Part shown: piece after piece, positions 54,836-61,178 of the stretch
How the letters are laid out: the number at the start of each line of letters is the position of its first letter
Numbering within the stretch: the first letter of the stretch is position 1
DNA from: Klebsormidium nitens
Taxonomy: Eukaryota; Plantae; Klebsormidiophyceae
DNA length: 64,000 nt
Reading direction: 5' to 3'
Assembly (NCBI GenBank): GCA_000708835.1
Contig: DF237404.1
Location: forward strand, 11,759 to 75,758
Made by a program: the position numbers and the translations under genes
The notes under the pieces: generated by a model
What the model saw: only the letters and a program-made list of their open reading frames with translations
The model's database searches: none
What the model was told of the DNA's origin: nothing

Positions 54836-57800
54836 CTAAGCGTTCCTCTTGGAGTTTCGATGCATCTTTCGATGCTCGAAGCGAGCAGGGGTTTGCAAGT
54901 GCTGGGTCCCGTCAATCGACTTTGGACTGAGTAACTCAGTCTGGGAAGCTACGAGGGACTGATACGTAAGCTTAACCCCAGTCTGGGGTATCAACACGTT
55001 TGGCTCTTGGGCCCCAGTAAGCACGTGGGCCTCAGGAGAGAAGAGTTGCCTAGCAATATGCCTCGCTTGGAACGGGACTGGGGAGGGGTGCGATCTGGGA
55101 GGGCTGACAAAGTCCTCGGTATTCCGCTTCCGTCCCCTCGCCGGCTGCATCTTCCCTGGAGTAAAGACCGGGCTTTGTAACCGGGATATGTGATCCCGTA
55201 AGTCTGGGGTCTGAGTCTGCCAGTGGGGAGGGACTGGGGCCAGTGACCGAGATGGGGGAGTGACGGGGGTTGACGGACAGTCATCAACCGAGTACCGCTC
55301 GAACGAAGTGCCCGGGCTGGAGGCGAACGGGCCGTAATCCGTTGCAAGAGCAGGCCCCCTTGAGTGTACAACACTGAGGGGGGCACTAAATATGATTTCT
55401 CCAGTCCCGCCTTTTTGTCTCAAGTCCAGCCTTGCAGCTTCCCTTGAGTCCAAACTTGCATCATGTCTGGAATCCAAACTTGCGGAACTTGGGGAGACCC
55501 AACTTGCAGACGCCTCCTGCAAGGGCGATTCCACACGTCCGGAAGTCCCAGCGCTCTGGGCACCGTCCCTCTGTCCACGTGGAGGGCTCGCGTGCTCCCA
55601 CGTGTCATAGTCTGGAAGGGTCACCTTCGGAAGCACCCGCACGGTCGCCCCGACCTCTAAATCCTCAAACCCTGTCGTTGTAACGCGACCCAAAAAGCCC
55701 CCGGCCGGAACCGCTCGCACGACGTCAGCGGATAATTGCTCCTCCGTCGTCTCGAGCTCGATCGACTGCCCGTTGATTTCGACTTCGAGCGGGGTGTTGG
55801 GAGGAACGGTGCGCGAGCAGTCCTCGAAGCGGATGTCAACCACGCAGCCGCTGATTTTGACGACGGCGCCCTCCTCGGGGAGTGGGGAGTCGTCAAGGTC
55901 GCCCTCTTTCTCCGACTCAGGATACTCAGCAAAGCGCGGCGTATCCTGCAGAAATGTACACAGGATTTATTAGCCATTTTTGTTTGGTTCTATCTGTTTG
56001 TAAAATAGATTGGGAAAATGAGAGAACAACAATGCGCTCATGGGGCGACATTCGACATCAGTGCTTGAGGGGCTTGTCCCGGAAGAGAAAGCGGACCTTT
56101 CCATGTGACAACCTGAAATGAAGGTGCGTTTCTGAATGCGCTAATACAGAGGCCCCCAGATTTGTCAGCTCACAACCACACGCACTCCAATCTGCTTCAT
56201 TCCAGATGAATTCAAGAACAATCGATTTTCAGACTGGCTTCCTGGGCCACGCGTCGATGAGCACTTCGTAACGCGGCCATTTTCCACGACCGCATCATCA
56301 GCAGACTGGAAGAGCGTCCAACGGATCTTGACCCATAATCCGACGTGGTTCTCAAAGAAAACGCTTGGCCGGCGAGATCTGAGGTCAGAATTGCCAGAAT
56401 CTTTCTCCTTTCAATATTGTTTCGGTTGCCCGTGTGCATACGCACCCAGTGAGCTCTCGAAGTTTCTTACCAGCTCAACCGTCATCTTGCTAGTGAGGGC
56501 AAACGGCCGGGCTCCACGTGGCAGGTCCCCTTCTTGCAGCAGCTTTGTCATAGCGCTATACAAGTCAATTTGAGAGTGCGCGTCCAGAGCAGCGTAAGAC
56601 AACTGCGGGAGATAAAGGTAACTTTGGCGCCAATATATCACTGAAATAGATCGAAGAATTTCTTGAGAAAGTTTCAGAAAACAAACCGACTTTGCAGACG
56701 AGACAACATAGTGGTCTAGCCCCAGGGTCACACCCAACGAAATATGTTTCCCCAGGAGAAGAAACGGAAGATCAAGGGAACAACACGGGAAGACACACGC
56801 AGTAGCAACAGTGTTTTCGTCAGTATATCGAGTATGATGAGATAATGCCGGCCTTGTCATGACCTGCAATTGAACGACCTTCAAGATGACAACGAAATTG
56901 CAATGATCATAGCGGCCCCAAAATTGCAGTGTATAGAAGGCCAGCGGCGAGACAGTGAGCATGACTTACCTGTGAGTTGCTCAGAGGTCGAGCGGCCCAG
57001 TCGCTCATGCACTGCATGGAAGGAGACCGGAAAAGGTTAGTAGGATCAAAAGTTCGAAATGCAGAGGTATCCGCAGACCTTGATTGCCATCAGGACCTCT
57101 CTCAGCCAGGGACAGATTGTCGACTTCCGTGAGGTTGTCCCTTAGTACAGGAGGTGAACACTAGCCACGATTCAGGTACCCTCAATTGTCACTGGATTGT
57201 CAGCGAATGACTGTAAGCCTCGTTTTAACCTGAAAACGGAAGAGGTCAAAGCAACGACGACTTTTGACATTCTCACCTCGGTTTTGTCTAGTTGTTTCCC
57301 CAGGTATTGCGCTACCAGCCAGGTGAGGCCTTTCTTGCCTTCGTGTGACTGCCACAGGTTGTGGAGCCGAGCCTTCTCTGACCCCGTGGCATCAGCGATC
57401 TGACTCTGAAAGCTGGGGGTCATGAAGCGAGGGTGCAGCGAAGAATGGAAAGCCTGAAAGGAACAGACGGTGTGAATTCGCCTCCCCTCGTGCACAGAAG
57501 GGGCTGCGGCAAAGCCAAAAGAAAGGATCCGCATGCAGGCAGAGCAGCGTTTCATGCTTCATACAAGAGATTGCAAGGGAAGTATGCAAACTTATAAAGC
57601 GATTGGTGCTGCATTTCTTGAAAAGTCTCACCTGAAGCTCGACGTATGGTTCCACAACGTCAAAGCAGCGCAAGTTTGGGTAACTTTGCTGCAGCTTTAT
57701 CAGATCCTGCAGATGTCAGACGAGCTTCAGGGTGGTTGAATAGGTCAAGTGTGCGAACAAAGGCACTTTATCAAATTGCTGGTTGAACAGGCAATGCTTG

Positions 57801-59053
57801 ACACAACGTCAATAGCTTTGCAAAGAAAGCCTGACAATTCCCGAGTAGGTCGTCAGTCAGAAGTGAATGCAATCACCAGACTGAAGAGCAACACAAGACC
57901 AATCTTTCAAATCAAAATATTAAGTGGACCTTTTTGCTTACCCCACGGAAGTCGGTGCCAACTTTGATAGCGCGCGGCGATGTCAAGAGGGTTCGCAACA
58001 GATTGTCCAAGTCGGAAGCACATTGTGACTTGCAGAGACTGATGAGATCGAAGAGAAAGACCTGGTCTTTCAAAGCAACCTGGCAGGAGAATTGGCGCAT
58101 GTTCAGAGGACACCTTTAACCAGTCTGTTGGATATAGACAGTAACAAAAATTGTGCAGTCTGTACCAACACCTTGTGCTCTTCCTTTCTATGAATAAAAC
58201 TTTGCATCGTTGGCTTTGGTAGCTGCGAGGCTCGAATCCTATTAGACTATAACCAGCTTGCTTCTTGGAGACCGTATGCTTCTTCAGGAAAAGGTGCAAC
58301 CTGTGATGCAAAAAGCAGTTCTTAACTACAAGGGGCCTAGCACATGACCAGGCAGAACAATCTGTAGATTACTCTGATGGTGCCAAAAATGAGATGCAAG
58401 CTATTGTCAAGTCCACACCTCAAAAACAATCTCGAATCCTCACTTCAATTCAGATCAGGCGTTTGATCAAGCATTCATCACTCTGCAAATGCCTTTAGTA
58501 GGAGTTTACAAACTAGAGTCCAGTCCAAGCTAGTGTTGGTCTCCTTACCTGCAGAATAGACGTCCTGCTCTCATTTCTAAACCGCTCTGGCCTCCATTCT
58601 GTGTCAAGCCCCACAAGCTGGGCCAGCAGTGACTCTTCCTGGTCACCAGATGAACCAACTTCATCACAGTCTCCATGCGTGACTTTCTTGATTTCGGAGA
58701 CCTCTAAGCTGGCCAGCAGAATGTTGCCAGCATCTTGCAGACTCTTGTCACCATGTACAAAGACGATCTGCAATCAACAGTGGCGCTTTCAGTTGGCAGT
58801 ACCATCATTGCTGCGATCTTGACTGCAACCACTAGAGTCTCGGAGACAGATTCATCTGTTCTTCAGACCATAGATAAGCTCTTCAGACCACAGATAAGCT
58901 GCCCAAGCATAGCAGACTCCATGCAGTTGCATAGACCTTTGTAATACATCCCACAGACTTACTCCCAATGACTTTGATAAATTTCCATAAGAAAGAGTCT
59001 CAACTTACCGGAAGGTCCCCCAGCTCCAAGGTAGCCAGAAGGGCTTCTGCCAT
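54836..59053 (-). CDS. DEDDy 3'-5' exonuclease (WRN/EXD3-like) with C-terminal F1-ATPase-beta-barrel-like domain and disordered S/P-rich tail
   Basis: Peptides: MAEALLATLELGDLP|IVFV...VGLDTEWRP (ExoI)...SILQ|VALKDQVFLFDL...IKVG; DLIKL...; GLTWLVAQYLGKQLDKTE|CMSDWAARPLSNSQ|LSYAALDA (ExoIII). The final exon 55945-54836 joins in phase 0. Confidence 0.85.
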
Positions 59054-61178
59054 GATGCTCAATGGTGTGCTCAGACCTCCTGAAGACCTCCACCAGCGTC
59101 CCAAGCAATGGGGAAGCAATGCAGCAACCTTCGAAGATTATTCACTGAAACTGGGGCCGCTAATATACCCGCCGCCTTCGTTGACGGTCATTGACATTGG
59201 GCACGGTAATTTTGATAACGCGCCGGCAAAGCATACCACTGGCTCACTGCCAATATTCCAGGTAGACCGCCGGGTCCAGAACAAGGCCCAAAGTGCTTCG
59301 GAACCGTCGAACAAGGGGCAGGCACTGCCCCAACAAGACATGTAGGCCGTTCGATGACACCTTCCTCACGTCTGATGTCACCAAGTTTTTGCCGGTCCCA
59401 CTTTTCTCGTCCTAAACCAGTCAAGACTGCGGCCCTGAATGAAATTTCAGCCAATGCGAAGCGTCCTTCACGCATCATGAAGGGGACTGCTTAAGCCCCA
59501 CACTTTTCGTCATCTTCCTGAATCTTTTCTTCCGGTGGCTTCGCAGCTGCAACATTGGGTACATTCTTGCCGTTCACAACAAATTCTCCATTCAAAGACA
59601 AGTGCAAATCTCAGCCAATGGTTATGCCGATGACCTCGCGCTTGTAGGCAGAACACACTCTGAGGCTCAGTGCTACCATGCTGCAAATGCTGGCGACTTT
59701 CCTGGCATACTACGATATGGAATTGAGTCCCACCAAATGCGGCTACCAGTTCCGCAACCCAAACCCTTTAGACAGGCCACCTCCCGGCCTCACCACCCAA
59801 TGGGGTCCAATCCCCACACTTTTTCAAAACGAAACCTACAAATACCTCGGGTACCACGCAAATATTAATCTAACATTCACTCACCAGCATCGCAGCCTAG
59901 TTGAAAAGCTAGAAGAAGCCAGCCGTAAACTCTTATCACGACAAAAACACAACATGACATTGAGCGAAGCGATACTCTACACAAATTCTGACGTCGCCTC
60001 CGTCCTTCGCTACAGGATGTATCTCGTATCCTTCCCGCAGAAATACCTGAAAAAGTTCCAAACAATCCTAGCTCGCACCGCAAGATCGCTAGCAAAACTA
60101 GCGTCATCCACGCCGAATGATCTGCTAATCAGCCAAGGCCTAATGAACCGTTTACTCCTTACAGTGCGACCCGAACAGACTTTGCGACCTCACTCTTTGA
60201 AACTGTGGATGATCCATGCCGAGTTTCGACTGAAATAGCCTATTCTAATATCCGCTCTGACTCACCGTTCAATGATACATGCCCCTTCAGCAAGACCGGA
60301 CTCTCCACCCCATACCGGGAAAGCCGCCTCCCACCCTTCTTCAGGGAATCCGCCCCTCCCTGCGGAAGACCAACACAACTCTGTGCATCAACATCAACCC
60401 GGAACCAGGCAAAGACGACCGAAGTATTGTCTCAACATTATCGCATGTCTTGACGAGGTACCAGAAAGATATAGAAGCAGCCAAGTTTTCCCCAACCACT
60501 GCCAGGTCACTTTTTAAACAAACTAAGTGCTCAGGACATGACACACCTCGATGACATCTCCCCCCTCTTCTCGGGATCCCTCTGGCTTATCTTGATCCAC
60601 ACAGAACGACAGCTCCAGCCGAACGCTGGGAAGGTGATAAAGGCCGCCCCATAAGAGCCCCAGCCGAAATACTGCAAAAAGTGGCAGACCGCCGTGACCG
60701 CCACTGGCAGACCGTGCTCCACAGTAATATCAAGTCCCGTTTGAAACTTACTGAGCCCCAGGCCCGCCTGCTCAGTGGCCTTGTCTCTCTCACATGGACC
60801 AAGTCCTCCTCAGAACATGCACCAACCACCCTGCTAGTGACCATACTGAAACGCCCCTTTTTTGGGGGCCAACCCGAAAACACGAGCTGTCCCACCACAC
60901 AGTATACACGGACGGAAGTGCTAACGAGGCCAACACCCTTGCTGGTTGCAGCATTGTTTTCAAGGAAGATGAGACCTTATGCGTGGCCAAAACCTTTAAA
61001 AGCCGCATCCCAGGCGATCAGACTATCAGTCGAGCAGAAGCTTTTGGCGTCTTGGGGGGCGCTACTTCTCACAAGGCAAGACTCTCCTCTCACAATTCAT
61101 TGCGACCGCAAATCCTTGTTTGACCAGATCAACAAATTGCGGACAAACCCGCCATCCAAACACCTTATACGAAAAATC

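Follow-up and report, generated by a model that had tools for sequence, protein, structure and literature searches.

Background

In the F1-ATPase, six N-terminal crown barrels form a collar whose barrel-barrel contacts keep the alpha3beta3 ring together, and this barrel is among the most conservative pieces of the bioenergetic machinery. The HAS-barrel of HerA and the N-terminal barrels of FliI and the type III secretion system (T3SS) ATPases are related to the F1 crown and serve to dock partner proteins, as HerA does with the nuclease NurA; to our knowledge, the HerA and FliI barrels invariably belong to a protein with a RecA-like ATPase domain, to which they are joined, and act in hexamers. 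Exonucleases of the Mut-7/Nibbler family are known from small-RNA trimming and silencing in animals. Here we describe KFL_004550120, a gene of Klebsormidium nitens located at 59053-54836 on the minus strand of a 64,000-nucleotide stretch of contig DF237404.1 (positions 11,759 to 75,758; hereafter the window, within which all coordinates are given). Its product is probably a Mut-7/Nibbler-type DEDDy exonuclease extended at the C-terminus by a linker, an F-type beta crown barrel and a disordered tail of about 250 residues, with the barrel as an accessory module. This would be a new combination of two well-known domains.

Similarity to the F1-ATPase beta N-terminal barrel

The barrel-like domain is encoded near the start of the last exon of the gene, exon 8, which covers 55945-54836 (-) and comprises 369 codons from the AG acceptor, with the stop codon at 54838-54836. 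Positions 55870-55628 (-) translate to GAVVKISGCVVDIRFEDCSRTVPPNTPLEVEINGQSIELETTEEQLSADVVRAVPAGGFLGRVTTTGFEDLEVGATVRVLP, i.e. about 81 residues corresponding to exon-8 residues 26-106. A preliminary description of the locus had quoted this peptide, which is encoded there exactly, and had likened it by eye to the N-terminal barrel of AtpD; the likeness turned out to be beyond chance in BLASTP, shuffling, custom profile and hhalign comparisons. As this hypothesis had been stated beforehand, targeted tests of it were legitimate. Judged by its sequence, the segment is a true but very diverged homologue of the F1-ATPase beta N-terminal barrel.

In pairwise comparison with Escherichia coli AtpD (NC_000913.3), BLASTP returned an E-value of 3e-5 over AtpD residues 4-73, with 23 of 73 positions identical (32%). 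The Smith-Waterman score against the same protein was 70 (z 8.2-9.2), a value reached by none of 5000 composition-preserving shuffles, whereas the z value against E. coli AtpA was only about 2; the signal is thus beta-specific. A custom hidden Markov model (HMM) was built from 16 bacterial AtpD N-termini (E. coli and 15 others from diverse bacteria). It gave 25.8 bits for the K. nitens domain and 18.1, 17.7 and 13.8 bits for three related open reading frames (ORFs; P0002-P0004, see below), while the best of 20,000 shuffles reached 9.9 bits. Alignment of the four Klebsormidium-type sequences with the 16 beta sequences by hhalign gave a probability of 94.9% and an E-value of 4.7e-8 over 53 columns.

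Searches of whole databases pointed in the same direction. When an 83-residue piece was compared with 177,635 PDB sequences by phmmer, all 12 matches at E<=10 were F1 beta subunits (best E 0.21), with alignments starting at the first residue of the barrel; with a 103-residue query the top six were again beta subunits, and one of the PDB alignments extended to "VGATVRV" against "TGAPIKI". Among 18,950 NCBIfam models, the sole match of a 123-residue segment was TIGR01039 (atpD), at profile positions 2-65 with an E-value of 0.1 (11.4 bits, cut-off 462.85). When an alignment of the whole exon from the four sequences (A1) was used for a PDB profile search, ATP synthase beta appeared only at E 1.2-1.5, the low-complexity tail having diluted the signal; a match to AIR2 in that search was spurious. 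In an ESM-Atlas feature search, which we treat as a lead only, three PF02874 clusters came out on top (scores 0.88-0.89, 177-185 shared features).

The K. nitens segment shares with the F1 beta crown barrel (AtpD/ATP2/AtpB) the motifs G-x-V-V-x-[IV]-x-G-x-V-V-D-[IV]-x-F, LEV, LE..(E/Q)QL and VR, it runs in register from start to end, and low-confidence models predict an all-beta domain of 6-7 strands. Directly behind it, in a by-eye comparison with AtpD sequences, the segment KVTLPDYDTWEHASPPR lines up with the VPVGxxTLGR strand that closes the barrel in beta subunits, its "LPKVTLPDY" standing opposite "VPVGKxTLGR". The barrel forms the protein N-terminus in beta subunits, whereas in K. nitens it lies on the C-terminal side of another enzyme; there it is followed by a lineage-specific LPDYDTW segment, without a P-loop or a C-terminal helical domain. 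In agreement with the preliminary description, which had noticed no ATPase domain after the barrel, Pfam recognized no family at E<=10 in the 369-residue exon, including the 263 residues that continue beyond the barrel to 54836 and are mostly predicted to be disordered. Neither Pfam nor NCBIfam revealed a nucleotide-binding domain (PF00006, Walker A/B) or a C-terminal helical domain behind the barrel. As no P-loop domain is present there, the barrel is incapable of ATP binding or hydrolysis.

Structure predictions

An AlphaFold2 model based on A1 (369 residues, 4 sequences) had a mean predicted local distance difference test score (pLDDT) of 41, with 50-62 in the barrel and below 50 in the tail. 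The model of the 103-residue domain, based on a second alignment (A2), had a pLDDT of 52.5 and a predicted template modelling score (pTM) of 0.42, and showed seven strands and no helix. With both models, nearly all of the top 50 Foldseek matches (3Di and amino acids) were beta-type subunits, namely F1 beta and the Mycoplasma G1-ATPase; on these low-pLDDT models the E-values were 0.006-0.1 over 80-87 aligned columns, the probability was mostly above 0.9, and the template modelling (TM) score of the domain model was about 0.42-0.45. Thus, of the AlphaFold/Foldseek check proposed in the preliminary description, the ranking came out for beta-type subunits, but at a pLDDT of 41-52 the barrel is not proven by shape alone.

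VIA-align, which compares shape only, placed the barrels of eRF3, EF-Tu and eIF5B at Z 5.8-6.3, F1 alpha at 5.7, the FliI N-terminus at 5.5, HerA at 4.9-5.3 and the G1-ATPase at 4.7, all of these values from a low-pLDDT model being below the level that allows more than "a common arrangement". The HerA HAS-barrel and the FliI/T3SS N-terminal barrels belong in this comparison to the same structural class of small barrel as the K. nitens model. They differ in that the K. nitens barrel stands without an ATPase, and no HerA or FliI signal was seen in its sequence. Taken as predictions, the models support a small closed beta-barrel only, and the assignment to the F1 beta barrel specifically rests on the sequence and profile comparisons.

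Gene model and organization of the terminal exon

A word search with the last exon retrieved KFL_004550120, a "hypothetical protein" [Klebsormidium nitens] of 645 residues (P0001). An 8-exon model was built by hand from three minus-strand frames and their splice sites, and its joined translation was identical to P0001. The full-length searches were run with P0001, and all others exon by exon. The barrel exon had been proposed to follow a complete DEDDy exonuclease in phase, and the public model joins the two in exactly this manner (phase 0/0); the upstream exon, previously placed at about 56475, actually ends at 56471. The features of the gene, all on the minus strand and listed in the direction of transcription, are as follows:

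59009..59053 (-): exon 1, ATG at 59053, 15 codons, read from the sequence
58549..58767 (-): exon 2, ExoI motif GLDTEW (D70, E72)
57942..58079 (-): exon 3, ExoII motif (D135)
57632..57706 (-): exon 4, part of the 8-exon model
57277..57453 (-): exon 5, contains an insertion of about 29 residues
56970..57011 (-): exon 6, part of the 8-exon model
56471..56602 (-): exon 7, ExoIII motif YAALDA (Y235, D239), donor GT at 56470
55946..56470 (-): intron 7, 525 nucleotides, GTAAGA...CTGCAG, phase 0; the junction on which the fusion hinges
55871..55945 (-): start of exon 8, acidic linker DTPRFAEYPESEKEGDLDDSPLPEE, 60-64% identical in P0002-P0004
55628..55870 (-): diverged F1-ATPase beta N-terminal (crown) barrel-like domain, protein residues 302-382
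55577..55627 (-): post-barrel segment KVTLPDYDTWEHASPPR, 17 residues, the best-conserved piece, with 76-82% identity to the relatives
55280..55576 (-): fast-evolving disordered stretch, exon-8 residues 124-222, 14-17% identity to the relatives, pLDDT below 50
55040..55279 (-): tail with conserved short motifs, exon-8 residues 223-302, about 50% identity to the relatives
54836..55039 (-): end of exon 8 including the stop codon, read from the sequence

All seven introns are of the GT-AG type and all seven are in phase 0. With such a uniform phase, any exon of this gene could be skipped or added with the frame intact. The GC content is 0.43-0.49 in the introns versus 0.48-0.62 in the exons. Intron 7, the longest of the gene, has a GC content of 0.48, by which it resembles the other introns and differs from its flanking exons, and it holds in-frame stop codons. 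It also contains a 44-codon ORF starting with ATG (56104-55970, minus strand), which is in the frame of exon 8 and is followed by two stops before that exon; no conservation of this ORF was found in the upstream ORF extension of P0003. Within exon 8 itself, no ATG occurs before residue 254.

In the tail of exon 8, the motifs STPV.PP.R, TPD.R, GRKR..EDFV.PPR and RH.ARQLF are common to the four sequences. Viewed by eye, these could recall a basic patch like that of a nuclear localization signal, kinase (CDK) sites of the minimal form S/T-P-x-R and a docking motif of the RxL type and, as a pure speculation, they would hint at cell-cycle-type regulation.

Just upstream of KFL_004550120 and antisense to it, two overlapping ORFs are present (59602-60238, plus strand), one of which has the sequence GYADDLALV, recalling the YxDD motif of reverse transcriptases. 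A retroelement remnant at this site was considered and is unsupported, as no Pfam match was obtained at E<=0.01.

The exonuclease domain

The N-terminal half of P0001 matches PF01612 (DNA_pol_A_exo1) over residues 64-254 with 79.1 bits, against a cut-off of 23.6, and an E-value of 4.5e-22; no other family was found in P0001 by Pfam at E<=10. Alignment with five further exonucleases (P0005-P0009) showed that the catalytic residues D70, E72, D135, Y235 and D239 are invariant, and the DEDDy set is therefore complete. The closest solved relatives are structures of the "Exonuclease mut-7 homolog" (Mut-7/Nibbler), 7jw2 (E 2.3e-10) and 7jw6 (E 6.2e-7), which outrank diDNase, the WRN exonuclease, Pol I and RNase D among solved structures.

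The spacing of the motifs and the signature MSxWxxRPLxxxQxxYAAxDA are common to the K. nitens protein and P0005-P0009, in line with the Mut-7/Nibbler/EXD3 subfamily. In other respects the algal protein departs from it. Nibbler and the relatives P0006 and P0007 carry a long helical N-terminal domain, whereas only 63 residues precede the catalytic domain in K. nitens. Mut7-C (PF01927), typical of the subfamily, was not found in the K. nitens protein by Pfam at E<=10, and the protein carries instead the C-terminal barrel and the disordered tail. Furthermore, an exon-5 insertion of about 29 residues around FMTPSFQSQIADATGSEKARLHNLWQSHEG within its exonuclease domain is missing from P0005-P0009. 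The relatives themselves are modular: P0006 and P0007, with their long N-terminal region, end directly after the catalytic domain, while P0005 bears C-terminal CCHC knuckles. In P0008 and P0009, a Mut-7-like PF01612 exonuclease is fused to a YbaK/ProX-type aminoacyl-tRNA deacylase domain (PF04073), another unusual accessory.

Relatives of the terminal exon and origin of the barrel

Word searches yielded three related ORF predictions, P0002 (Logan) and P0003 and P0004 (JGI/IMG), in which 64-66% of the first 125 residues are identical to the K. nitens sequence. All three were called as ORFs from a single exon, the same terminal one, and probably come from other Klebsormidium-like algae. Each has "LQ" (CTGCAG-like) directly before the conserved "DT.RF" and lacks conservation upstream of it, in agreement with a conserved acceptor at that point. 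An open frame of at least 347 codons is retained in all four diverged sequences. The identity of P0002-P0004 to the K. nitens sequence is 60-64% in the linker and 62-63% in the barrel as against 14-17% in the neighbouring residues 124-222, which indicates that the barrel is constrained relative to its neighbour (purifying selection).

Among 1.84 billion cluster representatives, the 123-residue segment retrieved only P0001, P0002 and three repeat proteins (P0011-P0013); the latter were rejected as relatives, their scores being sums of 4-10 partial matches. A metagenome scan with A1 confirmed no locus. So far, the barrel family is restricted to Klebsormidium-like sequences, i.e. to one algal lineage.

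We infer that the source of the barrel was a beta-type gene. With no more than about 30-34% identity to any beta subunit, the barrel is an old, strongly diverged derivative and not a recent insert of organellar DNA. Mitochondrial or proteobacterial betas are present and chloroplast betas absent in the weak PDB lists, and the pairwise scores against the 16 bacterial betas, together with the PDB list, do not discriminate between a mitochondrial, a plastid and a bacterial source. The earlier proposal, a possible capture of an atpB fragment from an organelle or a bacterium, is accordingly narrowed at most: the scores would fit more than one source, and the identity level excludes a recent organellar insert. 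The GC content at third codon positions (GC3) is 0.73 in the barrel region versus 0.62 in exons 1-7, a difference too small for a foreign origin to be deduced from it, and this argument was rejected.

Alternative explanations

Several observations weigh against the proposed fusion of an exonuclease with an F1-type barrel. PF02874 (ATP-synt_ab_N), the profile recommended in the preliminary description, gave no match at E<=10 in the 83-residue piece, the exon, P0001 or P0002-P0004. The profile signal comes mainly from the first 55 or so residues, the second half being far more diverged, and the database-wide E-values are marginal (0.1-0.2). The AlphaFold models, given their low confidence (pLDDT 41 and 52.5), are too poor for a decisive fold test, and VIA-align, as far as such models can tell, ties the translation-factor barrels with those of F1, FliI and HerA, so that the F1 fold is not specifically confirmed. 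Word searches found no full-length protein with both domains besides P0001. Finally, the published K. nitens gene models are Augustus predictions, with transcript assemblies mapped by SPALN (PMC4052687), and the joining of exons 7 and 8 is therefore annotation-level evidence (an Augustus model) and not a demonstrated splice.

The last point leaves room for a chimeric model, in which exon 8 is part of another transcript that has its own small, overlooked 5' exon, the exonuclease is read through into "intron 7" as far as a stop near 56411, and two proteins are made instead of one. Such an explanation, which we consider improbable, could draw on the junction being an Augustus prediction (PMC4052687), on the length of intron 7, on the 44-codon ORF within it in the frame of exon 8, and on the fact that other family members stop directly after the exonuclease domain. 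However, this small ORF is cut off from exon 8 by its two stops, the exon offers no ATG before residue 254 and the GC content of the intron is intron-like. The donor GTAAGA and the acceptor CTGCAG are canonical and compatible in phase, and the conservation shared with P0002-P0004 begins exactly at the conserved CAG acceptor, with nothing conserved upstream.

The domain might also be a generic small closed beta-barrel, e.g. of the translation-factor domain 2/3 type, with a convergent or compositional likeness to AtpD. The absence of a PF02874 match and the marginal database-wide E-values would be expected then, and by shape EF-Tu, eRF3 and eIF5B are level with or above the F1-type barrels. We nevertheless hold this to be very improbable. 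The models are too poor for a shape ranking to discriminate, whereas the sequence signal is beta-specific, in register from the first barrel strand, present in all four sequences, and survives 20,000 composition-preserving shuffles; moreover, no translation-factor family appeared in any of the sequence searches (Pfam, PDB, NCBIfam). Finally, exon 8 could be a decaying relic without a functional domain that was drawn into the gene model, e.g. organellar atpB DNA inserted into the nucleus or the remnant of a dead gene. The somewhat higher GC3 of the barrel region and the confinement of the family to a narrow lineage are the points in its favour, yet a decaying sequence is hardly reconcilable with a frame kept open in four diverged sequences or with a barrel and linker that are 60-82% identical next to a tail at about 15%, and a recent insert from an organelle could not be so dissimilar to all beta subunits. 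We therefore give this explanation almost no credence.

Possible role and significance

Based on these observations, we favour the reading of KFL_004550120 as a Mut-7/Nibbler-type exonuclease with an accessory crown barrel. In the proposed scenario, the Klebsormidium lineage would have acquired a C-terminal extension that opens with a crown barrel of F-type beta origin, detached and strongly diverged. The exonuclease domain, having all five DEDDy residues, would perform the chemistry, and the barrel would act as a non-catalytic accessory, docking a partner or mediating self-association. It would thereby take the slot that is filled in other exonucleases of the family by a long helical N-terminal domain, CCHC knuckles or a YbaK-like domain.

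The preliminary description had suggested an oligomerisation or interaction role for the barrel, which can only be inferred. Provided that the fusion exists, a module for docking or self-association is a possible but doubtful assignment, made by analogy: crown barrels hold the alpha3beta3 ring together in F1, and this nuclease family is modular, its members stopping after the catalytic domain or bearing other C-terminal modules. A more far-reaching suggestion, for which we see a rather low probability, is that Klebsormidiophyceae have exapted the crown barrel as a module standing on its own, by which a Mut-7-type exonuclease is assembled into rings or oligomers or is docked onto a partner.

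The preliminary description knew of no other such fusion, and none turned up in database searches: the pairing of exonuclease and barrel occurs in no other protein among the 1.84 billion cluster representatives, and a literature search found no description of an exonuclease paired with an F1 crown barrel. The narrow taxonomic range limits the significance of the finding. In an organism close to the origin of land plants, KFL_004550120 would nevertheless represent a lineage-specific accessory added to the Mut-7/Nibbler family. If the fusion is real, it means that reuse of the F1 crown barrel apart from its ATPase is possible, and a domain of about 100 residues would become an experimentally tractable example for what a crown barrel does alone. 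Should the exaptation proposed above also prove true, it would be the first case of a crown barrel working outside a RecA-like ATPase, and a small-RNA or RNA-trimming nuclease would have been rewired specifically in this lineage.

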